This document shows positions 3,214 to 59,435 of a stretch of DNA of 64,000 nucleotides, piece by piece (within the stretch, counting starts at the first letter, position 1; each line of letters starts with the position of its first letter). The stretch lies in IMG/VR virus record IMGVR_UViG_3300035182_002586, positions 310,001-374,000 of that record; one strand, written 5' to 3'. A model generated the notes under the pieces. That model was not told where the DNA came from and did no database searches. It saw only the letters and a list, made by a program, of their open reading frames with translations. Made by a program: the position numbers and the translations under genes.

Positions 3214-3387
3214 GAGCACTCCGGCCAACCGTAGTGCCTTGCAGGTCCAACTCATCGAGGTCGTACGACCAGCAGAGTGCCGGTTCATCGACATCGAAGT
3301 AGCGGGTTTCCTTGAGCGCGGCGTTGGTGGCGGAGCGCGCCGGTACACCAGAACCGGCAGGGGTCGACAGCTCGGACATGACGTTTC

Positions 3388-3621
3388 CTACGACGGTGCG
3401 CGAGTATACCCGTGCCTCACCCCGAAAGCACTTGCCTCCTCGGGCGTCAGCAGGCGCAGGTAGCCTTCTCTCACAAGGTCCAGGACAAGAGCTTCCGTCT
3501 CTTCGACGGAGATCCACCACCCAAGGTGCAGGGCGAGCTTCCCTACGAGGATAGGCCCTTGGGCTCGTTGTATGAACCCAAGGGCCATCGCACGGACTTC
3601 ACCGGCGGTCAGGCGCCTCAT
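3388..3621 (-). CDS. small hypothetical protein, possibly winged-helix
   Basis: 77-aa ORF in a co-oriented run; EETEALVLDLVREGYL resembles a wHTH recognition helix. Confidence 0.55.
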   Translation of the reverse strand: MRRLTAGEVRAMALGFIQRAQGPILVGKLALHLGWWISVEETEALVLDLVREGYLRLLTPEEASAFGVRHGYTRAPS

Positions 3622-3916
3622 CGGCCAACCCTACCGAAGCGTTCACCACCTGCCCGACGTCGATGTGACACAGGCGCGGAGGGGAGGGTGGTGACGCGAG
3701 CGCGAGCAACATCTCGGGCTCAGCGGGCACGGGCTCGAACTGGTCGAGGGTGTTGCACTGAACGATACGTGCTCCGCTCTCCCTCAGGAAGGCGGTGAGT
3801 TCGTCGATGTCGTCGACCTCGACGTTGAAGGTGTTGACCCCGGGATCGAGCAGAACTCGACGTGCCTGGATCACGATCTCTGTCGGGGTCCACACGACCA
3901 GCGAGTAGTAGGCCAT
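3599..3916 (-). CDS. hypothetical protein
   Basis: 105-aa ORF, ordinary composition, overlaps the next gene start. Confidence 0.65.
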   Translation of the reverse strand: MAYYSLVVWTPTEIVIQARRVLLDPGVNTFNVEVDDIDELTAFLRESGARIVQCNTLDQFEPVPAEPEMLLALASPPSPPRLCHIDVGQVVNASVGLADEAPDRR

Positions 3917-3942
3917 CCACTAGGAGGGCCCGCATCAAAGGG

Positions 3943-5115
3943 CTAGGTGACGGAAGCCGTCCGGGTCACCCCGGACAGGGGCAGAGCACGCACCTTCTCC
4001 GGGTCCAGGTGCACCGCGAACTCGAACGTCGCGATGATCTCCCACCTGTCGTAGACTTCCCTCTCTTCACACCGGAAGCTCAAGGGGTCCACGACGATGG
4101 CCCCTGCCTTCGCGCCCACTCCTACGGGGAGTACGTCGCAGATGAGGCAAGAAGCCTCGGGCGAGACGGCTCGTAGAGCCTTCGCATCGTCGGCTCCCGC
4201 GACCCACAACAGAGCCGGGTCGACATCCCCCGGCTGGAGCGTCCTCACGTCCACAGGGGAGAAGCTCCCCGTGTGGGCGAGAGTCGACACCTCGTGGGCG
4301 ATCTCGGCCACCCATCCGAGCCCGATGGCGGCCTGGAGATGGCGAACGCGGTCGAACGAGAGGTTGAAGGTCGTGGGGTCGCTGATGGGGACACGCGCAC
4401 GCGCAACCCCGGCGCAGCGGATCGCAGACTGAACCTTGTAGGTAGTGGTGGGTTCGTCCTGCCGTACGTCGAAGCGGTCGAGGAACTCCTTGGCCGTCCC
4501 CTGCACCAGGCCCAGGCCCAGGGTTTCGGGGAGCATCTCGCGGATGTGGTTGAACACGCTGCGACGCCCACCGGCCGTAACCGGCAGGAGTCTACGATCG
4601 CCCATCTCCCGCAGCATCGGAGTCTGCGTCGAGCGGGCCAGCATCTCCGCGTGGATGCGCTTGTCGCGCTCCCTGTCGAACTGCCACCGGACGAGGAACC
4701 CCTCCACCTCGGGGCGAAGACGAGGGAGAGGCTTCGCCATGCCCCCGCCTTCACGAGGCACGGGGGCCGGCTGCCAGATGTCTTCCTCCGTCACACGGGT
4801 GACGGCGCGACCGGTCTCCCGGTCGATGATGAGGATCGCGTCCCCGATCTGCGAGTACTCGTCGGCCAGGTATTCGGTGGCCTGTTGGACATCACCCTCG
4901 TGCGTGTCCAACGTTTCGGCCATGATGGGGAGCACGGCTTCGATGAGGCGGTCTCGGCCCCAATGCTCTTCCTTGGACCACCGGAAGATGTCCTTGAGGA
5001 GGGAGCTGCGCTCGATGGCCCCACGGGCCGCCAAGAGCCCCGTAGCCGAAGGGTTGGCCTTCGTATCGACGGTGATGGCCCCGGCTTCGGGCCCGAGGTG
5101 TGCGAGGTCCGCCAT
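3943..5115 (-). CDS. hypothetical phage protein
   Basis: 390-aa ORF, high GC3, 10 nt downstream of the AAA gene. Confidence 0.75.
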   Translation of the reverse strand: MADLAHLGPEAGAITVDTKANPSATGLLAARGAIERSSLLKDIFRWSKEEHWGRDRLIEAVLPIMAETLDTHEGDVQQATEYLADEYSQIGDAILIIDRETGRAVTRVTEEDIWQPAPVPREGGGMAKPLPRLRPEVEGFLVRWQFDRERDKRIHAEMLARSTQTPMLREMGDRRLLPVTAGGRRSVFNHIREMLPETLGLGLVQGTAKEFLDRFDVRQDEPTTTYKVQSAIRCAGVARARVPISDPTTFNLSFDRVRHLQAAIGLGWVAEIAHEVSTLAHTGSFSPVDVRTLQPGDVDPALLWVAGADDAKALRAVSPEASCLICDVLPVGVGAKAGAIVVDPLSFRCEEREVYDRWEIIATFEFAVHLDPEKVRALPLSGVTRTASVT

Positions 5116-5124
5116 GTTGGTCTC

Positions 5125-6723: not shown

Positions 6724-6802
6724 GATTTCGGAGCCTCGTGGAGAGTTGCGGTCCTTCCCTCTGATACACCGGAGGACCCTAAGTAGAGACGAGAGACCAA
6801 CG

Positions 6803-7439: not shown

Positions 7440-7483
7440 CGTCGTCGCCTCCGTGGGCTTTGTACACCGGCCCGGGTCACCAC

Positions 7484-8159: not shown

Positions 8160-11100
8160 TCACTCGGCGTCGATGGCCACCCCATCACTGAGCGCCAAGT
8201 TCCGAAGCTCCCGAGCGAACGTTTCGGGGTCGACGAGAACCCCGAAGGACGGGTCGATCAAGATGTTCCCGAAGGGGTCGATCAGTCGAAGAGGGGACCC
8301 ACGGTCCACGTCCCGAGCGATACCACAGCAGACGCCCTGCACGATTTTGACCGTCTGGCGAGAGACGTTGTTCAGGCGGATCGTGAAGGGCTTCCTCCCC
8401 GCCGCTGGAACCGGAGCCTTGGCGGGGGCCCGAGGGGCGTCCCAGACGTTCGGCTTGGCCGGGGTCATGACGATGGGGGCCGAAGCCTGAACGGGCGCTG
8501 ACGGGGCGCTGATGGGCGCCGGGGCAGCACTGGAAGGGGTCGGAGCTGCCCCTCCGGCGTTCACGGGAGCCGTCTGAGGCTGCATCCCCGCTACTTCCGG
8601 GTCCGTCTCCCACCCCGGCTTGAGGATGCCTTCGAGCCACGGTGGGACCTTGTGGTACAGCTTGTCCCCGACCTGGACGTGGAAGTCCTTCTCGTTGTCC
8701 TTGAGGTCCGAGAGCTTCCCCTTCTTCCCGCGGGTCAGCATGTCCCAGTTGTACTGACCGCCCCACGACTGACCGAGCAGGGGCTCTACGATCAGGGGGA
8801 CCCTCCACTTCGGAGAGAGCGGAGGCGAAGGCATGCTCGTCGGGGCCTCCATGATCCGCACAAGAACCGGCAAGACGACCGGCACGCGGTCGTTGCGGAT
8901 CTCGAAGACGATTTCGTCGTGCACCGTGAGCAGCATCCTCACGGTGTCGTCACCACCCTGCTTGAGCCACCCACGCTTGTAGAATTCCTTGTGCAGCAGG
9001 ATCATCACGATCTTCATGATGTCTGCGCCGGACCCCTGGATCGCGTAGTTGACCGCGTGGCGCTCGCACGCTGCTTTGATGGCGTTCTCGGGCGAATCGA
9101 TGTCGGGGATGGCGATCCACCGACCGAAGGCCGTGTAGACGCCCTTCTTCTCCTTGACCGTGGCGTGCTGCTTCTTGATCCACTTGGCGAACTCGGGGAC
9201 CGCCTTGTCGAAGAGCTGCTTCTTGCGAGCCGCTTCCTCACGCGTGCACCCGGGGATGGCGCGCATGATCGCTGCGGGTCCGCCGCCGTAGAGCAGTGCG
9301 AAGTTGGCGATCTTGCCGGCCTTGCGTTGTTCCTTGGTCGGCTTGTCCACGCCGAAGAACGCGCGCGCCGTGATGGTGTGGAGGTCCCCTTCCCCTTCGA
9401 GGAACTCCTTGATCCACACTGGCTCGCCCGAGACGTTCGTGGCGATGCGGAGTTCCTCGCCTGCGTAGTCCGACTTCACCATCGTGTAGCCGGGACGGGC
9501 GATGAACCCGTTGCGGAGTGCCGAGGCGCCAGGGATGCCGTGGATCGGCACGGCAGCGAACCCCTGCTCTGCGTCACCCTGCGGTGCGGAGAAGCGTCCC
9601 GTCGCGGCCCCGGTCTCTTTGAACTGGAACCGCATCTCGTGTGAGTCGGGGTCGAAGTTGGTCGTGAGCTTTTCGAGGTAGGTGCCGATCACCTTGTCCT
9701 CTTCACGCCAGTTCACGATCCACTGAAGCACCGGCGGGGCGTTGTCCCCCATCTCTTCGACGAGCGCTTCGAGCGTCTTGGCGTCGGTCTTGTACTGCCC
9801 ACTCTTCTCGTTGATCGGAGGCTTCCCCTTCGGCCAGTCCAGACTCTCGGTGACCGTGATGTTGAGGCCACGCTCCCCGGAGAAGAGGAAGTCACTGAGC
9901 TGCTTGGGTGACCCGGGCTCGAACCCGTGGAACCCCTTGCTCACCGCGAAGTCAATGATGCGCTTGTGCAGCTCGTCCCGCTTCTCGATGTGGACGACGA
10001 GCAGGCGACGGAAGCACTCCACGTCGATCTTGACGCGGTTGCGCTCCATGGTGCGCACGACCTGGATGACCTGCTTCTCGATGCGGTAGGTGCCTGAGAG
10101 GTCCTTCCGCTTCTTGACCTTGGGGATGATGTCGGGGATGTCGCAGAGACGACGCGTGCAGATGGCGTCCGAGCACGCGTACTTCTTGACCCCCTCTTCG
10201 TCCGGCGCGAGGGTGTCGAACTGGATGCGTCGCCCCTGCGTGAACAGATCCTTGAGCTTGATCATCTCGTACGCGTTCCCCTCGGGATCGCGCAGCAGCT
10301 CCATGGACTTGAACTTGAGACCGAGGGCCTTGTCCGCCGAGTAGATGACGAAGGACGCGAGCAGCCCGTCCTCGAAGCTCTCCGGGTGCCACCAGTCGAT
10401 GCCGGTAACCGGGTAGAGCATCTCCTGGTCAAACTTCGCGTTCCAGAAGTCGATGACGACCTGCGGGGGCTTCTCGAACACGCGGAACGAGAGGGGGTCC
10501 GTCTGGTCCGGCCCGGGCGTCGGCTGAGCCGCCCAGCAGAGGCGTGAGATCGCTTCCTCGACCTGCGTAACCGGGAGGTTGCCTGCGGGGCCGTCGTCGA
10601 TCGGGTTGTGGCGGACCGGGATGTAGTAGCCAGTCTTCGCGTCACCGACTGCGATGCAGAAGCCGACGATCTGGTGGACCGTGCGCGGCTTGCCCTTGGC
10701 GTCGTAAAAGATGCGGGTGTCGAGCCCTTGGGTCTCCAGGTCGAGCGCGCACCGCCCGACTCTGATCGCCTCGTCCACGATCTCGTTGACCTGCTCGATG
10801 CTCTTCACGAGGACGAAGTTGTGGTGCTTCATCCACGGCATCGTCGGGTTGGGGACCTGCCTCTCCGGCTGGATACCCGCGTTGAACATGAAGTCGTCCG
10901 GGCTATCCCCGTCGTCTTCCGGCAGCGGCGTGCCTGCATGTGCAGCAGCCACCTCTTCCGGGGGCGGCGGGTGTCCGTTGACCCGTTCGTAGAGCGCGGC
11001 CGCGCGCTGTTCCAGGCTCTCAGCATCCTGGCTCGGACCCGGGAGAGGGTCTCCCGGCAGATCGTCCGTCTCCCCCACCGCAGCCACAGGCGCGGGCGCG

Positions 11101-11213
11101 GGAGGGGCCGCAGCCGGGGTCGGCTCTGAGGGGCCGCTGAGCCCGAGGAAGGCGAGGGTGTCTTCCAGGTCGTCGTCTGCACTCGTGTTGGTTGTCACCG
11201 GCGTATCGCTCAA
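8160..11213 (-). CDS. polA: family A DNA polymerase with 3'-5' exonuclease domain
   Basis: ALDLETQG (Exo I), KSDYAGEELR (motif A), RKAGKIANFALLYGGG (motif B), TVHDEIVFE (motif C). Confidence 0.95.
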   Translation of the reverse strand: MSDTPVTTNTSADDDLEDTLAFLGLSGPSEPTPAAAPPAPAPVAAVGETDDLPGDPLPGPSQDAESLEQRAAALYERVNGHPPPPEEVAAAHAGTPLPEDDGDSPDDFMFNAGIQPERQVPNPTMPWMKHHNFVLVKSIEQVNEIVDEAIRVGRCALDLETQGLDTRIFYDAKGKPRTVHQIVGFCIAVGDAKTGYYIPVRHNPIDDGPAGNLPVTQVEEAISRLCWAAQPTPGPDQTDPLSFRVFEKPPQVVIDFWNAKFDQEMLYPVTGIDWWHPESFEDGLLASFVIYSADKALGLKFKSMELLRDPEGNAYEMIKLKDLFTQGRRIQFDTLAPDEEGVKKYACSDAICTRRLCDIPDIIPKVKKRKDLSGTYRIEKQVIQVVRTMERNRVKIDVECFRRLLVVHIEKRDELHKRIIDFAVSKGFHGFEPGSPKQLSDFLFSGERGLNITVTESLDWPKGKPPINEKSGQYKTDAKTLEALVEEMGDNAPPVLQWIVNWREEDKVIGTYLEKLTTNFDPDSHEMRFQFKETGAATGRFSAPQGDAEQGFAAVPIHGIPGASALRNGFIARPGYTMVKSDYAGEELRIATNVSGEPVWIKEFLEGEGDLHTITARAFFGVDKPTKEQRKAGKIANFALLYGGGPAAIMRAIPGCTREEAARKKQLFDKAVPEFAKWIKKQHATVKEKKGVYTAFGRWIAIPDIDSPENAIKAACERHAVNYAIQGSGADIMKIVMILLHKEFYKRGWLKQGGDDTVRMLLTVHDEIVFEIRNDRVPVVLPVLVRIMEAPTSMPSPPLSPKWRVPLIVEPLLGQSWGGQYNWDMLTRGKKGKLSDLKDNEKDFHVQVGDKLYHKVPPWLEGILKPGWETDPEVAGMQPQTAPVNAGGAAPTPSSAAPAPISAPSAPVQASAPIVMTPAKPNVWDAPRAPAKAPVPAAGRKPFTIRLNNVSRQTVKIVQGVCCGIARDVDRGSPLRLIDPFGNILIDPSFGVLVDPETFARELRNLALSDGVAIDAE

Positions 11214-11647
11214 GGCTTCTTCTCCTGCGTAACGACGACCACGTACACCCCTTCACGCCACAGGTTGATCGCCTCGGAGACGAGACGACGAAGTTCGTCG
11301 TCTACGAGACCTCCGGGCGTGTAGCACCAGGGCATTTTCTTCGCCGTGGGGTGACACTCGTTGGGGGCATACAGAGAGCACCGCGTACGCGTGTCACACT
11401 CACGGGCAACCACAGGGAGCTTTCTGAGAGCCCCTTGCGGTTGTACCCCGAGCGCATCAACGAGGGGTTTCGTCCACCCGACGAGAGCCTGGTCCATCAC
11501 CGTCTTCGTCACGACGGTGAAGAGGGCCGCGACCTCGTGATCTTGGAGGGCTCGCCAAGAAGACTCCCACTCCCCTGCTGTGTTGTAGATGAGGTACAGC
11601 TCCAGCTTCCCAAGCTCGCGCGGGCGGAGCGTCAACCGTCGGGGCAC
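11210..11647 (-). CDS. hypothetical Cys-containing protein
   Basis: GTG start at VPRRLTLR overlapping the upstream stop; ends overlapping the polA start. Confidence 0.6.
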   Translation of the reverse strand: MPRRLTLRPRELGKLELYLIYNTAGEWESSWRALQDHEVAALFTVVTKTVMDQALVGWTKPLVDALGVQPQGALRKLPVVARECDTRTRCSLYAPNECHPTAKKMPWCYTPGGLVDDELRRLVSEAINLWREGVYVVVVTQEKKP

Positions 11648-12285
11648 GAACGCTCCCTCTCCCCGATCTTGTCGAGGATTTTCCGCAGGATGGGGATGGC
11701 ATCCGTTGGCGTACGTGCTCCGTTGTTCAGCTCGTATGCCAGACGATCCAGAGCAGAACCGAGGGTGAGGTAGGGCCGCAGCTCGAAGCAGCGCTTGGCG
11801 CTGAGCAGGCGCCGCTCGCACACCTCGAAGAGCTTCCGCACTTCGTCGCTAGACTCGTCGTGAATCGCCTCCTCTTCGTAGCTCCCTCCGAAGGCCGGCG
11901 GTTCTGGCGGGGTGATGCCGTACGACTTCTCGATGTCTCGCAAGAGCCCCGTGAACCGGCCCTCGAAGTTGGTGAACTTCTTCCACAGCCCGATGCAGTC
12001 CCATCCGGGCTCCTGGCAGACGAAGCACCACATGTGCGAGGAGCCCTTCACGGACTCCGGGTAGAAGCGGCACGAGGGTTTCTTGTCCGCCCCGTGGAAC
12101 GGACAAGAGATCTGCTCCTCACGCGTGCCGTTGAAGCGAAGCTCGATCCCGTTGCGGGCGAGAACGTCGTACGCCGTCACCCGGTTGTGGATCAGCTCGA
12201 TTCGCTTCTTGACCCACTGCTTCGCCGCATCGGATTGCTCTACCTCGCGACGAGCCTCTCCTGCGAAGTCTCGTGCTCGTGCCAT
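11632..12285 (-). CDS. CHC2 (DnaG-type) zinc-binding-domain protein without TOPRIM domain
   Basis: ISCPFHGADKKPSC...WCFVC...GWDCIGL; between helicase and polymerase. Confidence 0.85.
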   Translation of the reverse strand: MARARDFAGEARREVEQSDAAKQWVKKRIELIHNRVTAYDVLARNGIELRFNGTREEQISCPFHGADKKPSCRFYPESVKGSSHMWCFVCQEPGWDCIGLWKKFTNFEGRFTGLLRDIEKSYGITPPEPPAFGGSYEEEAIHDESSDEVRKLFEVCERRLLSAKRCFELRPYLTLGSALDRLAYELNNGARTPTDAIPILRKILDKIGERERSCPDG

Positions 12286-12307
12286 CGGTTGCACCCCGTA
12301 CACCAGA

Positions 12308-15157: not shown

Positions 15158-15188
15158 GAGGTGGGCCTCGTCGTACACCAGGTGGGGG

Positions 15189-15449
15189 TCAGCCCTTCTC
15201 GTGCTTCTCTCCGTCGCGATCGACCCACTCGATCGCGGCCACGGCGACGGCTGCGACGATGACCATCTGGTGGCGGAACGTGCGGACGTTCCACGGCCAG
15301 TGCACGGCCCGACCAACGTGCTTCGTGAGGAGCCCGATCCAGTCGTTCGGCGCGTTGCACTCGTCGTGGTCGGGACCGCCCCACAGACGATCCTGCTTGC
15401 TGCGCTCGATGTTGATCTCGTTGTAGATGCCTTCGCGATCGTGGTTCAT
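15189..15449 (-). CDS. small all-alpha protein, possibly MazG/NTP-pyrophosphohydrolase-like
   Basis: ERSKQDRLWG...QMVIVAAVAVAAIEW helical pattern. Confidence 0.45.
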   Translation of the reverse strand: MNHDREGIYNEINIERSKQDRLWGGPDHDECNAPNDWIGLLTKHVGRAVHWPWNVRTFRHQMVIVAAVAVAAIEWVDRDGEKHEKG

Positions 15450-17191
15450 TGGCCTCGTTCCTCTTGCTGCATGCTGCGGATCAGGTCACGCGCAGACTGC
15501 TTCTCGGCGCCGAATTCCAGCGCCCCGACCGCCGCCTCGCCGAGCACCTTGTCGACGAGCCCCTTTTTGCCGCCGAGCAGCTTGAGGACGTGGTGGTCGA
15601 TAGTCTTGTTCGACTTGTACTTGCCCTCCGGCCGCTCTGCGATCAGGTGGTAGACGACCACCGTGTCGTGGACCGAGCCGATGCGCATCGAACGCCCGAG
15701 GAGCTGCACGTAGTTGCCCCAGCTCCACGGCGCGTCGTAGAAGATCATCGCTGACGCGGACTGTAGGTTGATGGCCTCGCTCCCGGCGTCCGTGATGAAG
15801 ATGACCTTCGTGTCGGAACTCATGTCCTGGAACGTCTGCTGCGCGGCGCGACGCTTGAGGTCCGACTCCTTGCCCGTGATGCGGACGCTCTTGATGTTCG
15901 CGTCCTTGAGGATCTGCTGGAGACGCGTGACGAGCTTCTCGAAGCGTGTGTAGATGATGATCTTTTCGTCGTCCAGCTCGCCCGTGATGAGGTCGAGAAG
16001 GGCCTCTTCCTTGCTCCCCTTCTCTTTGACCTTCGTGGACTCGTCGAAGTAGAACCCCGTCGAGATCTCTTGTCCGTCCTCGAACTTGAGGGTGTGGAGG
16101 GAGTTGACGATCTGCTGGCAGTAGATGAGAGAGGTGAGAGCCTTGGTCTCCGTGAACTCTTTCATCTCCCCGTCGCCGAGTTCGAGGATGCCGTCCAGGG
16201 CCTCCTTGTACTTCACGTCCTCCGCGAGGGACATCTCCACGGGGACCTCACGCGTCACGAGCTTCGGGAGTTCGTCTGAGACCATGTGCTTGGGCCTGCC
16301 GAGGAAGTAGGGGTCGATACGCTCACGGAAGATGTCGAGGTGCTTGTACCCAGTGATAATGGGGATCCGGCGCGCCCCGAATTTCTGGAGCACGACGTGG
16401 CAGAAGTCGTCCATGAACTTCTGCTTCGTGGTGAAGAGAGGCGGAACGACAGCCTTGTAGATCGAGAAGCCCTCGATCAAGTTGTTCTTCAACAGCGTGG
16501 CCGTCAGCCCGTAACACCGCTTCGAGCGATCCGAGAGGAAGCGGCACGTCTGCCACGTCTTCGTTCGCATGTTCTTGAACGCGGTCGCTTCGTCGAAGAC
16601 CGTCACCAGACTCGGGATGCCGGAGGTGAGCCGATCGAGCAGGCCGGGGGTCACCGGCTTCTTGGGGTCCGGGTGCCCGTTCGGGAGCAGAGGTACGTGG
16701 CCCCCGGCGTCCCAATCGCGTTGCAGGATGGGGTAGCTCAGGAGAAGGACCGCCTTCTCGCAGTTGGGGCCCGTAGGTGCCGCCTTCCACTCCTCATACA
16801 CGGCCCGTCGCTTCTCGGGGGTGCCCGAGACCACGTAGCACCGGACCCCGACCGTGAAGCGGGCGATCTCCCCTGCCCACTGGCGGAGCGCCGACTTCGG
16901 CGTGACGACGATCACCTTGTTGTGAGGCTCCTTGTTCGGCGCCCACAGGTGACACAGCGCCCCAATGACCTCGACGGTCTTGCCTAGGCCCGTGCCGTCC
17001 CCGAGCACCATGCGTGGCTGCACGAGCAGGTGGAAGATCCCTTGCGCCTGGTAGTAGCGAAGTCGCAAGGGCTGCGGCTTGCCGTCCTGCCCGATGATCT
17101 CCGTACGGAGCAAGGGCGTGGGCTTCAGCTCCAGCGTCTTGCTGGTTCGGATCTTCTTGAGCTTCTCGTGCAGCTCGCGGATGTCAGCCAT
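15446..17191 (-). CDS. SNF2-family helicase
   Basis: LGDGTGLGKT, VFDEAT, LTATLLKN, IIYTRF, DAGSEAINL, QLLGRSMRIG. Confidence 0.92.
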   Translation of the reverse strand: MADIRELHEKLKKIRTSKTLELKPTPLLRTEIIGQDGKPQPLRLRYYQAQGIFHLLVQPRMVLGDGTGLGKTVEVIGALCHLWAPNKEPHNKVIVVTPKSALRQWAGEIARFTVGVRCYVVSGTPEKRRAVYEEWKAAPTGPNCEKAVLLLSYPILQRDWDAGGHVPLLPNGHPDPKKPVTPGLLDRLTSGIPSLVTVFDEATAFKNMRTKTWQTCRFLSDRSKRCYGLTATLLKNNLIEGFSIYKAVVPPLFTTKQKFMDDFCHVVLQKFGARRIPIITGYKHLDIFRERIDPYFLGRPKHMVSDELPKLVTREVPVEMSLAEDVKYKEALDGILELGDGEMKEFTETKALTSLIYCQQIVNSLHTLKFEDGQEISTGFYFDESTKVKEKGSKEEALLDLITGELDDEKIIIYTRFEKLVTRLQQILKDANIKSVRITGKESDLKRRAAQQTFQDMSSDTKVIFITDAGSEAINLQSASAMIFYDAPWSWGNYVQLLGRSMRIGSVHDTVVVYHLIAERPEGKYKSNKTIDHHVLKLLGGKKGLVDKVLGEAAVGALEFGAEKQSARDLIRSMQQEERGQ

Positions 17192-17222
17192 GGGAGCGCG
17201 CCCGTACACCGGGCCGTACAGC

Positions 17223-17636: not shown

Positions 17637-17733
17637 CTGATCCTCCATCCCGGGCGGGGCCCGTACCCCTCGGAAGAGCGAAAAAGAGATCCTCCGGGAT
17701 GGATCAGACCCACCCACGCACGGTAGGAGGGAC

Positions 17734-18374: not shown

Positions 18375-18640
18375 CGACGGGGCCTGCGTTCGACAACTTG
18401 CAGAAGGGGGTCCAGAGGAACGTTCTCGTATATCGTCCCTGCCTCCATGAGGGCGACGAGATCCTCGTCCTCGACGTAGTACAGGGGAGCGTTCGGGTGC
18501 AGACCAGGCGCCTTGTTCACGATGAGCTGCCCCAACCTGGAGTGTGGCTGCATCAACCAGATCTGGAGCAACTTCTCGATGATAGCGCGCTTCTGCTCGG
18601 GGGTTTCGGCGCGTCCATGGATCGGGCGGTCGGCAGGCAT
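18371..18640 (-). CDS. hypothetical protein
   Basis: RLGQLIVN...LYYVEDEDLV; GGTGTA 11 nt upstream. Confidence 0.7.
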   Translation of the reverse strand: MPADRPIHGRAETPEQKRAIIEKLLQIWLMQPHSRLGQLIVNKAPGLHPNAPLYYVEDEDLVALMEAGTIYENVPLDPLLQVVERRPRR

Positions 18641-18664
18641 GGGGTCGGATCTACACCGGGCACG

Positions 18665-19024
18665 TTAGAAGTTGTCATCCGTGCGGAGCCGGTCCCACAG
18701 AGTTGGCCGAAAGATGGCGCTCAGCGTGATCATGGGAGCTGGAGCCAAGGGTTCCATGTCGATCCGCAAGTTCGCGAGGGCGCTCGGATCGATGAAGGCG
18801 CCACGCTCCGTCAAAATGGGCAGGATCTCCCTCATCTGACGCTCGATCCGACGCTGGACATCGGACACGAGCGTCAGACGTGCCAGGAGCAGATCCTCCC
18901 TCGTGAGAAGATACCGCAGACGCCCCCACTCCTCGTGCACTTGACGCGCATCTGTGGCGGCCAGGAACCGTTGCACGGTCGAAGTGAGTGCGTTCAGAAG
19001 CTCTTCGGCGTCTTTGGGGTCCAC
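18665..19024 (-). CDS. hypothetical protein
   Basis: 119-aa ORF; GGTGTA 10 nt upstream. Confidence 0.65.
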   Translation of the reverse strand: MDPKDAEELLNALTSTVQRFLAATDARQVHEEWGRLRYLLTREDLLLARLTLVSDVQRRIERQMREILPILTERGAFIDPSALANLRIDMEPLAPAPMITLSAIFRPTLWDRLRTDDNF

Positions 19025-19042
19025 CCTACGGATCTACACCGC

Positions 19043-19573
19043 CTAGACGCTCCAATAGAAGGTGAGGAACAGCTCGAACTCAGGGTTGGTGATGCCGAGG
19101 TCGGCCGCGACCTGAGGGAGCCCCCGAATCGCACAGTCGAGTTCGGTGTGGGGGACGGAACAGACCGGGTTGCTGCCTTGGGCTTCTCCGGTCTGGCGCA
19201 TCAACTTGAACCCCACCGCGAGAGGGCCCGACGGGTCCCGGATGCTCGACTCCACAGCTCCTACATCGTGGATGCCAAGGTCACAGTAGTCCCGATCCAC
19301 GAACTCGTAGATGCCGCTCTCTCGCAAGTCTGCCCAGCAGTCCTCGGCGTTGTTGTAGCCCGCGATGCTCTTCGCGAACTTGCGGAACCGCGCGGAGAAG
19401 ACTTCCTTTGGCTTTTCGGTGAAGGGGCCACCACACGAGGGGCAGAACTTCTGCCCCTCGGATTCCGGTGTGTGACCCCTGCTGCACAGCATCTCCGTGC
19501 CCTTCTTCTCGAAGAACTGGTCCCGCGTCACGCGAAAACCGTAGACGACGTACGCACTTCCATCCGCGCCCAT
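19043..19573 (-). CDS. hypothetical protein with zinc-ribbon insert
   Basis: MGADGSAYVVYGF...LCSRGH...FCPSCGG; GGAGG upstream. Confidence 0.7.
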   Translation of the reverse strand: MGADGSAYVVYGFRVTRDQFFEKKGTEMLCSRGHTPESEGQKFCPSCGGPFTEKPKEVFSARFRKFAKSIAGYNNAEDCWADLRESGIYEFVDRDYCDLGIHDVGAVESSIRDPSGPLAVGFKLMRQTGEAQGSNPVCSVPHTELDCAIRGLPQVAADLGITNPEFELFLTFYWSV

Positions 19574-19596
19574 GCTGTGACCTCCGAGCGCGCCGG

Positions 19597-19613
19597 TACA
19601 CCACGTCGGTGTA
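19597..19613. promoter_or_regulatory. back-to-back GGTGTA motifs between divergent genes (also 23959-23974, 28777-28794, variant 30988-31005)
   Basis: TACACC-N4..6-GGTGTA; motifs mostly ~10-12 nt from a start codon. Confidence 0.6.
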
Positions 19614-19623
19614 TTCCTAGAGC

Positions 19624-20172
19624 ATGAGAGCCGCTCCGATGCTGCACCTGGTCCCCCTCCACGAGTCCCACCTGGACCACGTGATGACGTGGGTGAACGA
19701 CCACGAGGTGATGGCGTACTTCGCGGCACGCCAGAAGGACATCACGCGAGAGGAAGAGGCGGCGTACCTCAAGACGCTCATCGCGTCGAAGAACGACCGG
19801 GCGTTCTCGATCTTCGCCACGGACCGCAAGCTCTTCGCCGGGGACGATCTGAACCCCGGCACGTACGTCGGCCAGTGCTCGATCAACCAGATTCACTGGC
19901 CCTCCAAGAACGGCCGTCTCTTCCTCACGATCCGCAAGGAGATGCAGGGGCAGGGGTACGGGGCAGCCGCCATCGACGAACTCCTGACCCACCACGCCTT
20001 CAACCCCAAGCGACTCGGACTGCACAAGGTCTGGCTGATCGTCCAAGCGGAGAACCTGGCGGCGCAAGCGATGTACCTCAAAGCAGGCTTCGCGTTCGAG
20101 GGTCTGCTGAAAGACGAGTACCTCGTCGGAGACAAGTACTACGACATGGTGCGCATGGGCCGCATCGCCTGA
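19624..20172 (+). CDS. GNAT acetyltransferase, RimJ/RimL/SpeG-like
   Basis: MQGQGYGAAA acetyl-CoA motif, LGLHKVWLIVQAENLAA...YLKAGFAFEG...YDMVRMG. Confidence 0.9.
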   Translation: MRAAPMLHLVPLHESHLDHVMTWVNDHEVMAYFAARQKDITREEEAAYLKTLIASKNDRAFSIFATDRKLFAGDDLNPGTYVGQCSINQIHWPSKNGRLFLTIRKEMQGQGYGAAAIDELLTHHAFNPKRLGLHKVWLIVQAENLAAQAMYLKAGFAFEGLLKDEYLVGDKYYDMVRMGRIA

Positions 20173-20174
20173 TC

Positions 20175-21110
20175 ATGCCGCGCCTGCTCATCGACTGGCT
20201 CCACGATGGGGAACTCCCCATCTTCCGTGCCCCGGGTGCCGTGTACCACGTCCTGCCCTACGAGGGCGACGTGCCTAGCTGGCAGCCGACCTTCAACCTC
20301 AGGGAGAAGGTCATCGTCCCCCTACGTGAAGTCCTCATCCAAGACCTAGTGCCCTTGCTCCGGGCCCTGCTCGACGAAGCCCCGGAGGAGGCCCTCGTCA
20401 TCGTCACATTCCGCACGTACTGCGAAGAGTTCGAGTTCACGTGCATGGGTGTCGCTTCCATCGACCCCTGCCCAGAGGAGCTGGCCTCCGGCACCGAGGA
20501 GCGAGGACCGCCTCCCCTGTCTTGGCGGGTCGACCCCGCCTCGTGCGGAACGCCAGAAGAGCTGGCCCCGCTGGTCCTCGATACCATCCGTGGTCGTGGG
20601 GGCCGGAACGTCGCGCGTCTTCACCCGGTCACCCGCGAGATGTATCGACGGATGATCGCGAAGCGTGAGGACCACCAGCGACGCCTCGACTGGAGCAGGG
20701 AGAACCCGGACCACGAAGAGAACGCGTGGTTTGAGGCCATGGCTCAGGGGTTGATCGACAGGTTCGAGCAGAGCCGTCTCGCGCGCGTGGAGAAAGAGCG
20801 GCAGGAAGCCAGGGCCCGAAGCCTCCTCCTGGAAGTGCTCTCCCCGGCACAGGCAGCGTCCCTACAGGAACACGGACACTTCGAGGTGCGGGGGCGAGAC
20901 GGGCGGAACTACCGCATCAAGAACGGCTTCGCCCACAACGTGTTCCTGCTCGACGAGGCCGGCACTGCCAAGGTCGAGTACTGCATCATCACGCGGGACC
21001 CTACGCCCCTCTCGGATCACATGCTCGCGCAGAAGCTCCTCCTGGAGTCCTGCCCCGAGGTGTTTCACGAGATCGCGAACTTCCGCGACCTGACGGCTCC
21101 GAGCCCCTAG
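20175..21110 (+). CDS. hypothetical protein
   Basis: ORF from MPRLLIDW, 2 nt after the GNAT stop. Confidence 0.7.
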   Translation: MPRLLIDWLHDGELPIFRAPGAVYHVLPYEGDVPSWQPTFNLREKVIVPLREVLIQDLVPLLRALLDEAPEEALVIVTFRTYCEEFEFTCMGVASIDPCPEELASGTEERGPPPLSWRVDPASCGTPEELAPLVLDTIRGRGGRNVARLHPVTREMYRRMIAKREDHQRRLDWSRENPDHEENAWFEAMAQGLIDRFEQSRLARVEKERQEARARSLLLEVLSPAQAASLQEHGHFEVRGRDGRNYRIKNGFAHNVFLLDEAGTAKVEYCIITRDPTPLSDHMLAQKLLLESCPEVFHEIANFRDLTAPSP

Positions 21111-21394
21111 TGCGCCTGCGCCTTCCGGCGGGACACCTTCTTGGTGACCTTGCGCTCCCGGGCGCGCTTCTCCCGGTGCTCGTTGCCGACCAGGTGGCCG
21201 ATGACGTGCGCCGTCCCGTTCGTCTGGTCGAGGATCTTCCTCCAGCGAGCGTCGACCTCCACGAAGCGCTGAACCCTTGGGTTGCGCAGGAGGCGGTCTC
21301 GCTCTTTCAGCAGCTCGACCCCCTCCTCGAAGAGGTCGGCGAAGCGGTCCACGGCCTCTTCGACGGCCACGGTCCGACCGGTCTTGCGGGCCAT
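21107..21394 (-). CDS. small basic hypothetical protein
   Basis: MARKTGRT..., start overlaps the upstream stop. Confidence 0.6.
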   Translation of the reverse strand: MARKTGRTVAVEEAVDRFADLFEEGVELLKERDRLLRNPRVQRFVEVDARWRKILDQTNGTAHVIGHLVGNEHREKRARERKVTKKVSRRKAQAH

Positions 21395-22074
21395 CAACCC
21401 TCCTCGCTGCGCTTGTAGCCTTCCACGTCGAACAGCTCGAAGGGCTCGCCGCCGTAGATGCGCTTCTTGCCAACGTCCTGGTCGAAGTTGTAGGGGCGGT
21501 GTTCGTACTGGAGTTCGTCGGCCTCGCCCTCTTCGCTGGGAGGCTGTTCGACGAGTCCCGTGGCAGCGAGGAACGCTGCCTGCTCCGTCTTGTTCATCTC
21601 GCCGTAGCGGACGACCCAAGGGTTCTCGTTCGCCGAGCAGAGGTTGAAGCACGCGCCACGGTGCGTCTCGTCCTTCGCCACCTCGTCGAGGAGCTTCGCC
21701 ACCCCGAGCATCGTCTCGGCCACTTGGGTCCGCTCAGTGCGCCACGGCTTGGACGGATCCATTTCAATCCACGAGTGCTCCTCGTAGAAGCTACGCAGCG
21801 CGGCCGCCAACGCACCGAGGTTCTCGCGCGCCACCCACACGCGGTCGTAGGTCGAGCCGAGGACCAGGTTGTCCCTCTCGGAGAGCTTCCCGGAGTTGAA
21901 GAGAGGCCAGAACTTGGCTAGCTTCGCCTTGTCGTTCCACGGGAAGTCGCCGAACCCGGTCTTCTTGGCGATCACGTCCCACGCATGGGGAGCGTAGGCG
22001 TGGTTGTTCCGGGCAGCGCCCACGTAGACCACATCCCCCTGCTTGTTGATGGCGTAGACCGAGCTGTAACTCAT
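21394..22074 (-). CDS. hypothetical protein
   Basis: MSYSSVYAINKQGDV...; GGTGTA 9 nt upstream. Confidence 0.75.
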   Translation of the reverse strand: MSYSSVYAINKQGDVVYVGAARNNHAYAPHAWDVIAKKTGFGDFPWNDKAKLAKFWPLFNSGKLSERDNLVLGSTYDRVWVARENLGALAAALRSFYEEHSWIEMDPSKPWRTERTQVAETMLGVAKLLDEVAKDETHRGACFNLCSANENPWVVRYGEMNKTEQAAFLAATGLVEQPPSEEGEADELQYEHRPYNFDQDVGKKRIYGGEPFELFDVEGYKRSEEG

Positions 22075-22155
22075 GCCCTCTAATACACCTCGGCCCGCAG
22101 ACCGACCCATCCGAAGATGGGGGTTGCGGGCCGAGAGGCGCTTGAGCGCGGTGGG

Positions 22156-22965
22156 TCACTCGTCGTCGTGGAGCTTGAGGTAGCGCTCGATGGCCGGCGT
22201 CACCTTCTTGCGCTTCCAGTTGTCGAAGGACTTCATCGCGAGGTCCCCCGTGAACTGCTTGGCGAACCCGGGCAGCAGGCCCTTGTTGATGATGTCCTTC
22301 GCCGTCAGACCTTCCGAGGTCATGTGGAAGAACTGCGGCAGGTCCGGGTGGATCGTCTTGAGGAACTCCATGAACTTGTGGAGCTGCTCGGCCGTCATGG
22401 CCTGATCCATCTTCTTGAAGGCGTTCGGATCCTCCGGGTCGATCTGAACGAAGTGCCCCTCGTCGTCCTCGTGCCCGCCGGGCCCGTGGTACTTCTGACG
22501 GCGCTTGTTCTTCGCCATCTTGTTGAGGGCGAACTTCTTGAGCCCATCGAGCACGTAGCTCTCGGCCTGATGGACGTTATAGCTGCCCGAGAAGCTGTGC
22601 CCGTGGAGCAGTTCGAGCTGGTAGTCGCTCAGCGTGTCGTGCACGTCGGGCGTCTTGAACCCGAGGGCGTAGAGCATCTTGGCGGCTCGATCCCCGAGCG
22701 TGGCTCCGTACCCGTGGGGAAGCTTGTTCATGAGACGCGGGCTCGACGTGTCGAACTCCGCAGCCGGGGTCCCGTGGATGTCGGGCATGTTCTTGACGCC
22801 CGCGCGGAGGAACTCGGCGTAGACGAGAAGACCGAACGCCTGCGCGACGGAATCCGTCGCGAGACGCATGAAGCCGAGCATCAGGCGGTAGCCCCTCGGC
22901 ATGGAGGCACCGATGCGGCGCTGGAGGTCGAGGGCGGCCGAGGCAAGGCGGCGCTGAAGGCTCAT
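22156..22965 (-). CDS. ECF sigma-factor-like protein with N-terminal extension
   Basis: Region 2-like DVHDTLSDYQLELL...ESYVLDGLKKFALNKMAKNKRR and region 4-like FFHMTSEGLTAKDI...NWKRKKV; recognised by pattern only. Confidence 0.5.
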   Translation of the reverse strand: MSLQRRLASAALDLQRRIGASMPRGYRLMLGFMRLATDSVAQAFGLLVYAEFLRAGVKNMPDIHGTPAAEFDTSSPRLMNKLPHGYGATLGDRAAKMLYALGFKTPDVHDTLSDYQLELLHGHSFSGSYNVHQAESYVLDGLKKFALNKMAKNKRRQKYHGPGGHEDDEGHFVQIDPEDPNAFKKMDQAMTAEQLHKFMEFLKTIHPDLPQFFHMTSEGLTAKDIINKGLLPGFAKQFTGDLAMKSFDNWKRKKVTPAIERYLKLHDDE

Positions 22966-22978
22966 GCCGTGCCTTTCC

Positions 22979-22984
22979 GATAAA
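22979..22984 (-). promoter_or_regulatory. CTTRTC/TTTATC motif upstream of late-type genes (also 43731, 40282, 36315, 1041, 55360; plus strand 25679, 27597)
   Basis: 13-14 nt before the start in five cases; longer spacing where an SD-like sequence is present. Confidence 0.5.
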
Positions 22985-23006
22985 AGGCGTATCAGCCGGG
23001 ACCCCA

Positions 23007-23246
23007 TTACTGCGCGGCTTCGTCGGAATACACCTCGTCTTCGACGAGCTTCGCGGGCACACCCCCCTTTTTCGGCCGTTTCGCGTACTGCGAAGGCCGG
23101 AAGAGGAAATCCGCCGCTGTGTCCAGAATGACGCTCGCCGGCACGTCTCGCTCCAGGGCCACCCCGTCGGCGTTCTTCCCGACGACAATCCACCCCCGGC
23201 GGAGGAGGACCTGTGCCGCCTTGAGGTTCTTGACCCTGATCTGCAT
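23007..23246 (-). CDS. hypothetical protein
   Basis: 79 aa; GGTGTA 10 nt upstream. Confidence 0.6.
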   Translation of the reverse strand: MQIRVKNLKAAQVLLRRGWIVVGKNADGVALERDVPASVILDTAADFLFRPSQYAKRPKKGGVPAKLVEDEVYSDEAAQ

Positions 23247-23255
23247 ACCTGGGGG

Positions 23256-23948: not shown

Positions 23949-23986
23949 GGGCCGAGACTACACCAGCCGGTGTACCGGCGCGCCCG

Positions 23987-24364: not shown

Positions 24365-24366
24365 GG

Positions 24367-28766: not shown

Positions 28767-28805
28767 GCCTCTACTGTACACCGTCTGTGGTGTACCTGCC
28801 GGCGC

Positions 28806-43717: not shown

Positions 43718-43876
43718 ACCGTGTGCGGGCGATAAGAGAAGATTTCACAGACGTTCCGGGTGGTTCCGTGAGGACACGAAAAACGACACGAGCTTTGCAC
43801 GGTGATCCACGAGACCCCGACGATTTTGTGCAACACGAGAGGGCCGTACGGGCCTTGTACCTAGAGGAGGCCCACC

Positions 43877-58240: not shown

Positions 58241-58322
58241 TTCGATCTCCATCTGGATGGATCGGTGCGGGGGCCGATCGGTAGTCCGCAGTAGGGTGTT
58301 TCTACAAGGAGAACCTCGACCG

Positions 58323-58616
58323 ATGGACCTTATGACCATGCCCAAAGGGGCACCTTCTCTGCACGCACTGAACAACGCAACCTCCGGAAATCTATTGGAT
58401 TTCGCGGGGTATTGCCGACAGCACGGCTTCACGGCGTCGGTCGTCGTTCAGACGGAAGGTCTGCATGACGACGAGGCGGTCCTGCACCTGCACGCAGCCA
58501 ACGCCTTCGGGCGGACCACGCACTTCGAGTCCCATCAGCTCACGGGGCGAGCGGCGAAGGCCGCCCGGGACCTCAAGAACCTGTCTCCGGATCTGACCTT
58601 CCGCTTCCGCCTGTAG
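58323..58616 (+). CDS. hypothetical protein
   Basis: AAGGAG upstream of ATG at 58323. Confidence 0.55.
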   Translation: MDLMTMPKGAPSLHALNNATSGNLLDFAGYCRQHGFTASVVVQTEGLHDDEAVLHLHAANAFGRTTHFESHQLTGRAAKAARDLKNLSPDLTFRFRL

Positions 58617-58974
58617 ACGGAGGAGGGACCTCAGCCTTCGTCTCGTACCTCTTCGCCAAAACGATCAGGACCCGCCGCCACACACGTAACGGGATCCCGT
58701 GCTGACGGATCAGCTCCCTGCGGGCTCGCTCCGACTGCGAGTTCGGGCAGGTGTGGAGGTGATGGTCGGAACGACGGCGACACAAGCGGCAGACCGGCTC
58801 TTTTGGCGGCCCGACAGCTTCCTGTGCCTCTCTCGTCAACTGGTGGCGTGCCTTGCGGATCGCCTTCGGATCCGAACGATTGACCCATGGGACGCAGGCC
58901 CGCCGATGTCGCCGCATCTGCGGGTACGTCCGGCAGGTGAACCCGCAGATGCAGGGGTGGATCCTGGTGGCCAT
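58573..58974 (-). CDS. Cys/His zinc-finger basic protein
   Basis: PCICGF...QMRRHRRAC and CRLCRRRSDHHLHTC. Confidence 0.55.
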   Translation of the reverse strand: MATRIHPCICGFTCRTYPQMRRHRRACVPWVNRSDPKAIRKARHQLTREAQEAVGPPKEPVCRLCRRRSDHHLHTCPNSQSERARRELIRQHGIPLRVWRRVLIVLAKRYETKAEVPPPSTGGSGRSDPETGS

Positions 58975-59104
58975 GGCTCGCACTTCCCAAGGGAGCTACC
59001 CCTCGTCGCAGCATGGTGATTCCCGGGTGCTTGTGCACCCGGGAACCGTCCCACCAAGCCGCAAAGTGCCCTCCATTCAAGGCGTTAGGTACACCAGCTT
59101 CACG

Positions 59105-59407
59105 CTACGCGTTCAGGAACGGCGACTCGATGCGGACAAACGGGAAGCACCGAAGCCCCCGGATCGCGTACACGATCGCGTCACGCATCGCAGGCGGAGC
59201 CTTCCGCGCCTCTTCCGGAGTCATCCCCTCCGCGAACCGGATGACCAGCAAGTGCTCGCCTGCCTCGGACATCCGCATCTCCAAGGACGACACGTGCTCC
59301 ACCTTGTGTCCGTCCACGAGCAGGTCGCCCGAGACTTGAAAGGGGAACGCTCCTGGTGCCACGTGTAGGTCCAGGTTCACAGAGATACGATGGGCGAGGG
59401 AAGACAT
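59105..59407 (-). CDS. hypothetical protein
   Basis: AGGAG upstream, 100 aa. Confidence 0.6.
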   Translation of the reverse strand: MSSLAHRISVNLDLHVAPGAFPFQVSGDLLVDGHKVEHVSSLEMRMSEAGEHLLVIRFAEGMTPEEARKAPPAMRDAIVYAIRGLRCFPFVRIESPFLNA

Positions 59408-59435
59408 GAACTCCTAGACGGTGTAGTAGACACCC

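Follow-up and report, generated by a model that had tools for sequence, protein, structure and literature searches.

YGGTGTAS, a probable compact promoter upstream of gene starts in a 529-kb phage and its uncultured relatives

Introduction

The closest described analogue of the element presented here is the gp36-dependent middle/late promoter of phage phiEco32 (tAATGTAtA). It is read by host core polymerase together with the phage sigma factor gp36, has its AATGTA centred at -11.5 and the start site 6-8 bp downstream of the 9-mer, and lacks a -35 element (PMC8948821, PMC12276001). The late promoters of phage T4 (TATAAATA at -10, read by gp55 with gp33 and the sliding clamp) are likewise minimal 8-bp single-element promoters without a -35, used by a large lytic phage for a whole temporal class, and their mRNAs have leaders with Shine-Dalgarno sequences. 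In Actinobacteria and Deinococcus, leaderless mRNAs arise from a -10 element (TANNNT) placed about 7 nt before ATG or GTG, without a Shine-Dalgarno and with the start site at the A or G of the start codon (e.g., PMC4007540, PMC4633059). Jumbo phages that encode their own multisubunit polymerases, such as AR9 (late AACA-N6-TA/G) and phiKZ (early and late promoters), carry short phage-specific consensus elements in dozens to more than a hundred copies per genome (PMC5312081), yet AR9 5' UTRs are 26-491 nt long and phiKZ showed no leaderless transcripts. Finally, the start-associated sequences of cluster K mycobacteriophages and the stoperators of cluster A are short conserved sequences repeated just upstream of many gene starts and oriented with transcription; the former contain the ribosome-binding site and lie 3-8 nt from the start, whereas the latter are repressor sites with no fixed distance to starts.

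Here we analyze a 64,000-nt stretch (positions 310,001 to 374,000 of IMG/VR record IMGVR_UViG_3300035182_002586; hereafter the window) of a 528,957-bp virus record with 64% GC. A preliminary description of the window, made from the sequence alone, had noted the hexamer GGTGTA about 10 nt before many start codons, often back-to-back at divergent gene pairs and often without a Shine-Dalgarno, and had inferred a phage-specific -10-like element producing leaderless or near-leaderless mRNAs. A literature search for the hexamer in connection with phage promoters returned nothing relevant, and a megablast search with 6 kb of the window against cultured and deposited phages found no match.

Position and abundance of the motif

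The observation of the preliminary description is confirmed and every coordinate it gave is correct, but it captured only the local part of a signal that is genome-wide and lineage-wide. The window contains 34 copies of GGTGTA against 10.0 +/- 3.4 in dinucleotide-preserving shuffles, and none of 100 shuffles reached 34. Thirteen of the 34 copies have an ATG 9-13 nt downstream, while the per-site null rate derived from the 59 permutations of the hexamer is 4.8% (binomial P = 3e-9). Genome-wide, 332 copies are present, of which 139 have the first ATG 9-14 nt downstream (about 19 expected) with a mode of 10 nt; the counts at gaps of 9/10/11/12 nt are 17/47/37/21, against about 3-4 expected per position (P about 1e-80). 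Positional enrichment over shuffled controls, which had been proposed beforehand as the test of the observation, is thus overwhelming. In total, 150 called genes carry the motif, and a motif-blind gene caller based on codon usage placed the start exactly at the motif-associated codon in 104 of them.

Within the window, single motif copies on the minus strand lie at 12299-12304 (13 nt before ATG 12285 of a primase-like gene, 11632-12285), 17205-17210 (13 nt before ATG 17191 of an SNF2-family helicase gene, 15446-17191; a variant of the extended GGTGTACSGGCGCGC form), 18652-18657 (11 nt before ATG 18640), 19035-19040 (10 nt before GTG 19024), 22084-22089 (9 nt before ATG 22074), 23257-23262 (10 nt before ATG 23246), 29816-29821 (10 nt before ATG 29805) and 32898-32903 (10 nt before ATG 32887 of a LAGLIDADG-type homing endonuclease gene beside the major head gene). 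On the plus strand, single copies lie at 31000-31005 (10 nt before ATG 31016) and 59420-59425 (10 nt before ATG 59436).

Three back-to-back pairs of the type TACACC-N4..6-GGTGTA are present in the window. In the pair at 19597-19613 (spacer 5 nt), the left motif (19597-19602, minus strand, extended 15-mer form) lies 23 nt before ATG 19573 with a GGAGG Shine-Dalgarno in between, and the right motif (19608-19613, plus strand) lies 10 nt before ATG 19624 of an acetyltransferase-like gene. In the pair at 23959-23974 (spacer 4 nt), the motif at 23959-23964 (minus strand) lies 10 nt before ATG 23948 of a phosphatase-like gene and the motif at 23969-23974 (plus strand, extended 15-mer form) lies 12 nt before ATG 23987. 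In the pair at 28777-28794 (spacer 6 nt), the motif at 28777-28782 (minus strand) lies 10 nt before GTG 28766, which opens only a 48-codon ORF that our gene caller did not call, and the motif at 28789-28794 (plus strand) lies 11 nt before ATG 28806.

At larger distances, the motif is found on the minus strand at 15174-15179 (16 nt before ATG 15157, with GAGG in between), 7463-7468 (23 nt before ATG 7439, with a GGAGG Shine-Dalgarno in the leader) and 6765-6770 (41 nt before ATG 6723 of an AAA ATPase gene, with GAGG 8 nt before the start). The extended 15-mer GGTGTACCGGCGCGC occurs at 3335-3349 (-), 19588-19602 (-) and 23969-23983 (+); at 3335-3349 there is no start codon at the usual distance and the downstream gene start is uncertain. 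This shared 3' extension defines a sub-family of seven copies.

Sequence and context of the motif

The information content is confined to Y-GGTGTA-S. At every position from -45 to -2 of the motif it is at most 0.09 bit, so that a -35 element is absent, and back-to-back pairs leave only 1-10 nt upstream of each motif. One-mismatch variants show no positional peak. Four nucleotides after the TA, the base counts are A16 C30 G59 T23 of 128; T is therefore not enriched at the position equivalent to -7, nothing is conserved between the motif and the start, and the motif is not a TANNNT-type -10 element. If transcription starts at the A of ATG, which is inferred, the TA of GGTGTA falls at -12/-11 at the modal gap of 10 nt. 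The motif resembles an extended -10 (TGnTATAAT) in principle only, because TG directly abuts TA and both preceding G are also required ([ACT]GTGTA shows no peak). A consensus scan for TTGACA/TATAAT found one site in 19 kb holding many transcription units, against 1.9 expected.

Motif genes are enriched at divergent junctions (59 of 150 against 104 of 510 other genes; P = 5e-6). In divergent intergenic regions as short as about 35 bp the motif is the only conserved element. Across the genome, 18 back-to-back pairs have spacers of 1-10 nt, so the whole signal for each direction fits into about 17 bp; most sites are single, and a fixed-spacing dimer site, as expected for the palindromic operator of a dimeric regulator, is excluded. 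The remaining 91 of 150 sites are inside same-strand gene arrays with only about 23 nt of spacer, which is equally what a translation signal would look like.

The occurrence of Shine-Dalgarno 4-mers at -17..-5 depends on distance. They are found in 14% of genes when the gap is 9-12 nt (n = 128) and in 83% when it is 16-30 nt (n = 12; Fisher P = 1e-6), compared to 45% in the remaining genes, where they peak at -14..-9. In addition, ATG is used by 86% of motif genes against 65% of others, and C at -1 occurs in 71% against 47% (both P < 1e-6). The absence of a Shine-Dalgarno and the strong preference for AUG are as expected for leaderless mRNAs, and pyrimidine(-1)/purine(+1) is the pattern preferred at transcription start sites. 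Two tRNA genes have the motif 13 and 15 nt upstream (0.07 expected, P = 0.002), where a translation signal has no role.

Search for a polymerase or specificity factor

Six-frame searches of the genome with Pfam models for Sigma70_r2, RNA polymerase beta, RNA polymerase beta-prime and the T7-type polymerase found nothing, although the T7-type model gave no hit in any control genome either, making that negative weak. Sigma region-4-like proteins are encoded, and one of them is 63-67% conserved in 6 of 6 lineage records. A 393-aa candidate has only a sub-threshold Sigma70_r2 match (E = 0.024), no PDB sequence match and three homologues in a word search; its AlphaFold model is poor (pLDDT 49.5), and its in-genome paralogue shares only the inserted domain. 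A 215-aa protein is predicted to fold acceptably (pLDDT 72.9), but shows only region-4-like domains, as Foldseek returned only sigma region-4 domains at E > 0.07. A phmmer search with phiEco32 gp36 against the 692 predicted proteins gave no hit below E = 2.8. The reader of the motif could thus not be identified.

Interpretation

We propose, with reasonable though not full confidence, that YGGTGTAS is a compact, single-element promoter without a -35 partner, specific to one lineage of huge phages and probably their middle-gene promoter (DNA replication and nucleotide metabolism). In this view, the RNA polymerase is most likely the host core enzyme redirected by a phage-encoded specificity factor; the polymerase would bind the motif at about -17 to -10 and start transcription about 8-11 nt downstream. 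With the start codon 9-12 nt after the motif, the mRNA would begin at the A of ATG or 1-4 nt before it and be translated without a Shine-Dalgarno, whereas a motif further upstream would give a leader with an ordinary Shine-Dalgarno. Our analysis directly establishes the motif with its spacing, orientation and enrichment, the absence of any other conserved element, the dependence of the Shine-Dalgarno on distance and the conservation across the lineage. That RNA polymerase binds the motif, where exactly transcription starts (and hence the leaderless nature of the mRNAs), which factor reads it and to which temporal class it belongs are inferences from sequence. The phage was found in four DNA sequencing runs only (sediment, microbial mat, groundwater); their contigs, aligned to window positions 18500-24400, gave no start-site information, and the partial variant table was too sparse to test conservation. 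Some sites also fit the model less well: in three of the five sites with a gap of 16-18 nt, the Shine-Dalgarno-like run begins only 3-6 nt after the motif and would be excluded by a start site 8-11 nt downstream, so that either the start can lie closer to the motif or those runs serve read-through transcripts. The evidence supports the interpretation given in the preliminary description, which nevertheless missed at least one other promoter class.

Compared to the phiEco32 promoters, the motif, likewise phage-specific, shares a single highly conserved element near -10 with an NNTGTA hexamer and the same TGTA core, the lack of a -35 and, as inferred here, a start site a few bp downstream and reading by host core polymerase with a phage factor. 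It differs by GG in place of AA before TGTA, by about 150 sites per genome instead of six, by the lack of a detectable gp36 homologue and by its coupling to the start codon at 10 +/- 1 nt, a feature not reported for phiEco32 in the texts consulted. The T4 late promoter has an unrelated sequence. In contrast to the leaderless promoters of Actinobacteria and Deinococcus, there is no conserved T at -7, the conserved GGTG lies upstream of the TA, and the signal is specific to the phage lineage rather than being the host housekeeping consensus. Unlike AR9 and phiKZ, no multisubunit polymerase is detectable here.

Among the alternatives, an initiator-type promoter survives best, but we consider it unlikely. 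Transcription would start inside or right at the end of GGTGTA, as with the TATG late promoter of phiKZ, by an unrecognized phage polymerase, giving leaders of about 10-13 nt without a Shine-Dalgarno rather than leaderless mRNAs. The early Shine-Dalgarno-like runs at some sites with a gap of 16-18 nt, which would be transcribed only if the start lies at or next to the motif, are in line with this, as is the position of the motif further upstream (-16..-11 if the start is at ATG) than a normal -10 hexamer; moreover, divergent phage polymerases can escape Pfam models. Yet, a Shine-Dalgarno-less leader of about 10 nt has no known reason to be so tightly constrained in length, whereas coincidence of the start site with ATG explains the sharp peak at 10-11 nt. 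The C(-1)/A(+1) signature and the excess of ATG starts sit at the start codon rather than at the motif, and the searches for RNA polymerase beta, beta-prime and T7-type families found nothing.

Slightly less likely still is a binding site for a phage regulator, either a stoperator-like repressor or an activator, next to weak, unrecognizable promoters. The motif is highly specific, asymmetric, oriented with transcription, numerous and located in short intergenic spacers, which are the properties of cluster A stoperators; the GGTGTACCGGCGCGC sub-family hints at an additional bound factor, and HTH proteins with sigma region-4-like domains are encoded and conserved. However, nothing else conserved in the minimal divergent spacers could serve as the promoter, a stoperator does not need a distance to the start codon fixed within +/- 1-2 nt, and the Shine-Dalgarno switch and the C(-1)/A(+1) signature point to start-site placement.

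A translation-initiation signal (GGUG pairing with the CACC of the anti-Shine-Dalgarno, or a site for a phage-modified ribosome) is very unlikely despite the complementarity of GGUG to part of the 16S 3' end, the lack of canonical Shine-Dalgarno sequences, the many sites in same-strand arrays and the investment of the phage in translation (54 tRNAs and a tmRNA), because GGTG, the only part able to pair, ends 12 nt before the start and thus too far for the CACC-proximal part, the invariant TA is unexplained, the required upstream start site would fall in the other gene's motif and coding sequence in back-to-back pairs with no conserved promoter, a normal Shine-Dalgarno is added when the motif is 16-30 nt away, and the motif precedes two tRNA genes. 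The related idea of a Shine-Dalgarno variant in a small cellular genome with an altered 16S 3' end was dropped, since the record is a virus without rRNA and the spacing is too long.

A more far-reaching reading remains possible but doubtful. A globally distributed lineage of 300-530-kb phages, with hundreds of contigs in IMG/VR and a major head protein more than 88% identical throughout, would run about a quarter of its genes through an 8-bp, -35-less promoter unrelated to any described consensus. The reader would be a specificity factor that is not a recognizable sigma, perhaps the lineage-conserved 215-aa protein built only of sigma region-4-like domains, or an undetected polymerase. The resulting transcriptome would be largely leaderless, letting the phage translate its early and middle genes independently of Shine-Dalgarno recognition.

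Conservation across the lineage and additional elements

The motif is conserved across a widespread lineage of huge phages. Eighty loci from relatives (1.07 Mb, 50-64% GC) give gap counts of 21/52/9 at 9/10/11 nt, and five records of 312-407 kb carry GGTGTA-N9-11-ATG 28-127 times, against 3-10 for the reversed control and 9-12 for N19-21. One orthologous gene (26-64% protein identity) keeps the hexamer at -15..-17 in 19 of 20 loci, while the flanking bases are near-random. The signal is strong in records whose major head protein is at least 88% identical, weak in LR745208.1 (83% identity; 17 sites against 6 for the control), and not enriched above the control in the cultured Tunturiibacter phage Tunturi_5 (49%; 5 against 5) and in the examined regions of more distant relatives. 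The motif is a simple marker for this lineage, but the cultured relative is not a usable model for it.

Gene regulation in huge phages known only from metagenomes has essentially not been described. The motif offers a sequence-only way to place about 150 transcription units and exact start codons per genome across hundreds of related contigs, and defines a probable temporal regulon of replication and nucleotide-metabolism genes. It further suggests large-scale use of leaderless mRNAs by a phage and points to an unidentified specificity factor, since no phage polymerase and no complete sigma is recognizable.

Besides GGTGTA, the window contains sites of a second promoter-like class, which was not part of the preliminary description. 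One bipartite site with the same leaderless geometry, ATGGATC-N16-GGTAGG-N6, lies at 17699-17733 (+) and ends at ATG 17734, and a site resembling this class, ATGGATC-N..-AGTAGTAGGGGGAG, lies at 25078-25113 (-) and ends at ATG 25077. A hairpin with a 16-bp stem at 31897-31932 (+), between the convergent genes 31016-31762 (+) and 31940-32887 (-), is a likely terminator that closes two transcription units of the GGTGTA class.

Genomic context

The record from which the window (bases 310,001-374,000) is taken is a single-contig IMG/VR virus record of 528,957 bp with 64% GC. It carries a cluster of 54 tRNA genes and a tmRNA outside the window (genome 123254-176528), including one tRNA with anticodon TTA, which would read UAA, and the tmRNA carries the tag ANDNGTVITALKAAA. 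No 16S rRNA is present. The phage is present at sediment, microbial mat and groundwater sites. IMG/VR labels the record, and several large relatives too, as 'provirus'. A protein identical to one of its products is on record on a 620,031-bp contig, so the record may have been trimmed from a longer contig. Within the window, the phage encodes a family-A DNA polymerase, a DnaB-like helicase, an SNF2 helicase, ThyX and a major head protein (phrog_2522). A search with 6 kb of the window found no near-identical relative among deposited phages. Based on the head protein, the nearest deposited records are the uncultured phage LR745208.1 (83%), the Acidobacteriota jumbo phage Tunturi_5 (49%) and Bacillus phage G (39%).

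Occurrence and anatomy of the motif

The preliminary description reported GGTGTA at a short distance upstream of many start codons, often back-to-back between divergent genes, and this observation is confirmed, all of its coordinates being correct. GGTGTA occurs 34 times in the window, against 10.0 +/- 3.4 in dinucleotide-preserving shuffles. Genome-wide there are 332 copies, for which the distance from the motif to the first ATG peaks sharply, with 17, 47, 37 and 21 copies at 9, 10, 11 and 12 nt, respectively, whereas the 59 permutations of the hexamer give about 3-4 per position (P about 1e-80). A motif-blind gene caller built from codon usage predicted 692 genes (85% coding). By its calls, 150 genes carry the motif 6-17 nt before a possible start, and in 104 of these the caller had independently chosen that very start. 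About 180 further copies are not tied to a start, while roughly 80-100 are expected by composition alone.

Alignment of 128 sites shows information only in Y-GGTGTA-S, with C or T before the hexamer (87 C and 31 T of 128) and C or G after it. Nothing is conserved from -45 to -2 of the motif, nor between the motif and the start. The hexamer is strict, since none of the one-mismatch families tested shows a positional peak, and it is the most enriched 6-mer upstream of genes (119 observed against 6.5 expected). A sub-family shares a longer form with a GC-rich extension, GGTGTACCGGCGCGC, with seven copies genome-wide, three of them in the window at 3335-3349 (-), 19588-19602 (-) and 23969-23983 (+), and others at genome positions 33813, 289071 and 409429. 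Its gaps are slightly longer (11-13 nt or more), and it may hold an extra regulatory site overlapping the start.

Evidence for a promoter

Several independent features point to a promoter. First, genes preceded by the motif are over-represented at divergent junctions (59 of 150 against 104 of 510; P = 5e-6), and there are 18 back-to-back pairs of the form TACACC-Nk-GGTGTA with k ranging from 1 to 10. The variable spacer rules out a palindromic operator of fixed geometry. It also means that everything needed for each direction lies within about 17 bp, because the next bases upstream are the other motif. Both genes of such a pair must be transcribed from somewhere, yet nothing else is conserved there.

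Second, the Shine-Dalgarno pattern depends on distance. GGAG, GAGG or AGGA at -17..-5 is present in 14% of genes when the motif is 9-12 nt away (n = 128), in 83% when it is 16-30 nt away (n = 12; Fisher P = 1e-6) and in 45% of the other genes, where it peaks at the canonical -14..-9. In the window, the starts at 19573 and 7439 have GGAGG in a 23-nt interval. A promoter that starts transcription shortly downstream explains both regimes, whereas a ribosome signal borne by the mRNA does not. Third, the motif lies 13 and 15 nt before two tRNA genes (tRNA-Thr at genome 139975 and tRNA-Ser at 150469), where 0.07 occurrences are expected (P = 0.002). Fourth, motif-associated starts are ATG in 86% of cases against 65% for other genes, and are preceded by C in 71% against 47%, as expected if the A of ATG is the +1 nucleotide. 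Finally, canonical TTGACA/TATAAT promoters are not enriched in a 19-kb stretch full of transcription units (1 found, 1.9 expected). A strong hairpin at window 31897-31932 (+), with a perfect 16-bp stem, lies between two convergent genes and is probably a bidirectional terminator that closes two convergent units.

With the modal gap of 10 nt and a presumed start at the A of ATG, the TA of GGTGTA would sit at -12/-11, the position of the two best-conserved bases of sigma-70-type -10 elements; however, there is no T at -7. If TGTA instead occupies -12..-9, as in phiEco32, where AATGTA is centred at -11.5, the modal transcript would have a 2-nt leader. 'Leaderless or near-leaderless (0-4 nt)' is therefore the robust statement on geometry. 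A start at the motif itself cannot be excluded, since three of the five sites with gaps of 16-18 nt have a Shine-Dalgarno-like run only 3-6 nt after the motif.

The preliminary description proposed a phage-specific, -10-like element giving rise to leaderless or near-leaderless mRNAs, and this interpretation is supported by every sequence-based test that we could run, although not by direct RNA evidence. The motif, its spacing to the start, the distance-dependent Shine-Dalgarno pattern and the conservation in relatives are read directly from sequence, whereas transcription from the motif, the position of the start site and the leaderless nature of the mRNAs are inferred, as are the factor that reads the motif and the temporal class of its genes.

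Other promoter-like classes

A second, bipartite class emerged from the k-mer analysis: ATGGATC-N15/16-KGTAGW-RGGGRAC-ATG. The gap from TGTA (or GGTA) to ATG is 8 nt, and all starts are ATG, with C at -1 in 92%. Forty-nine sites were tied to called genes, and about 75 are visible by eye among the 95 ATGGATC copies. They cluster at 422-524 kb and 1-10 kb of the genome, mostly before small genes of unknown function. This class has the layout of a bipartite sigma-type promoter with a GGG-rich discriminator and a start at ATG. Examples in the window are found at 17699-17733 (+) and 25078-25113 (-), preceding the starts at 17734 and 25077, respectively, and at 58257-58322 (+). A possible third class, YTTATC (TCTTATC or TTTTATC), precedes leaders that carry a Shine-Dalgarno, often before large structural genes. 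It comprises about 20 sites genome-wide, and in the window it is seen at 43731-43736 (-), before GTG 43717, and upstream of 36282 and 22965. TTATC occurs 21 times against 1.4 expected in otherwise unclassified upstream regions.

Genes behind the GGTGTA motif that have a recognizable function are replication or nucleotide-metabolism genes, namely primase-like, SNF2 helicase and methyltransferase-like genes, and uracil-DNA-glycosylase-like genes in relatives. A middle temporal class is a reasonable inference, but no more than that. A LAGLIDADG-type homing endonuclease with a C-terminal HTH (window 31940-32887, -) lies right next to the head gene and has its own GGTGTA motif; a homologue sits in the same place in some relatives (L028, L031) but not in others.

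Comparison with described promoters

The nearest analogue is the single-element promoter of phiEco32 sigma gp36 (tAATGTAtA), which has no -35 and a start 6-8 bp downstream (PMC8948821, PMC12276001). It shares the NNTGTA form, yet gp36 has no detectable homologue in this phage. T4 late promoters are a conceptual parallel. The jumbo phages whose transcription has been mapped behave differently, as AR9 has leaders of 26-491 nt and phiKZ has no leaderless transcripts (PMC5312081, PMC8244752). Leaderless promoters of Actinobacteria and Deinococcus share the geometry but use TANNNT. Phage-specific single-element promoters are already known; what differs here is the inferred coupling of such a promoter, genome-wide, to leaderless starts in an uncultured lineage of huge phages.

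Candidate specificity factors

No RNA polymerase beta, beta-prime or T7-type gene was detected in the genome, although the T7-type negative is weak, but sigma-related genes exist. A 215-aa protein (genome 71524-72171, -), encoded next to a 5'-3' exonuclease gene and a clamp-loader-like gene, is made of an acidic N-terminus and two sigma region-4-like HTH domains. It is 63-67% identical in all six lineage records examined and is a candidate transcription factor. A 117-aa protein (genome 479437-479790) is essentially region 4 alone. A 393-aa protein (genome 93299-94480) has a sub-threshold region-2 match and is present but fast-evolving in 6 of 6 records. None of them could be shown to be a complete sigma, and host core polymerase redirected by a phage factor is therefore an inference.

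Conservation in the lineage

The major head protein (window 33027-33959, -) is extraordinarily conserved. It has 576 matches in IMG/VR, of which the best 80 were kept; these are 88-97% identical at the amino acid level and lie on contigs of up to 407 kb, with a GC content ranging from 50 to 64% and with other genes that are far more diverged (SNF2 63%, PolA 64%). In the 80 corresponding loci (1.07 Mb), the GGTGTA-to-ATG gap counts are 21/52/9 at 9/10/11 nt. Whole-record counts of GGTGTA-N9-11-ATG in five records of 312-407 kb, one of which has terminal repeats and is rated complete, are 127, 58, 28, 51 and 60, while the reversed control gives 6, 8, 10, 3 and 4 and the same hexamer with N19-21 gives 9-12. 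For a fast-evolving gene near the head gene (26-64% protein identity between orthologues), 19 of 20 loci defined by tblastn keep GGTGTA at -15..-17, whereas the adjacent bases have major-allele frequencies of only 0.3-0.7. A locus with a 63%-identical SNF2 helicase keeps the motif before that gene. The signal fades outside the clade, with 17 sites against 6 for the control in LR745208.1 and 5 against 5 in Tunturi_5. The family-A DNA polymerase (window 8160-11198, -) matches its homologue in LR745208.1 (285047-289888) in four separate pieces spread over 4.8 kb, which suggests insertions (inteins or introns) in the gene of that relative.
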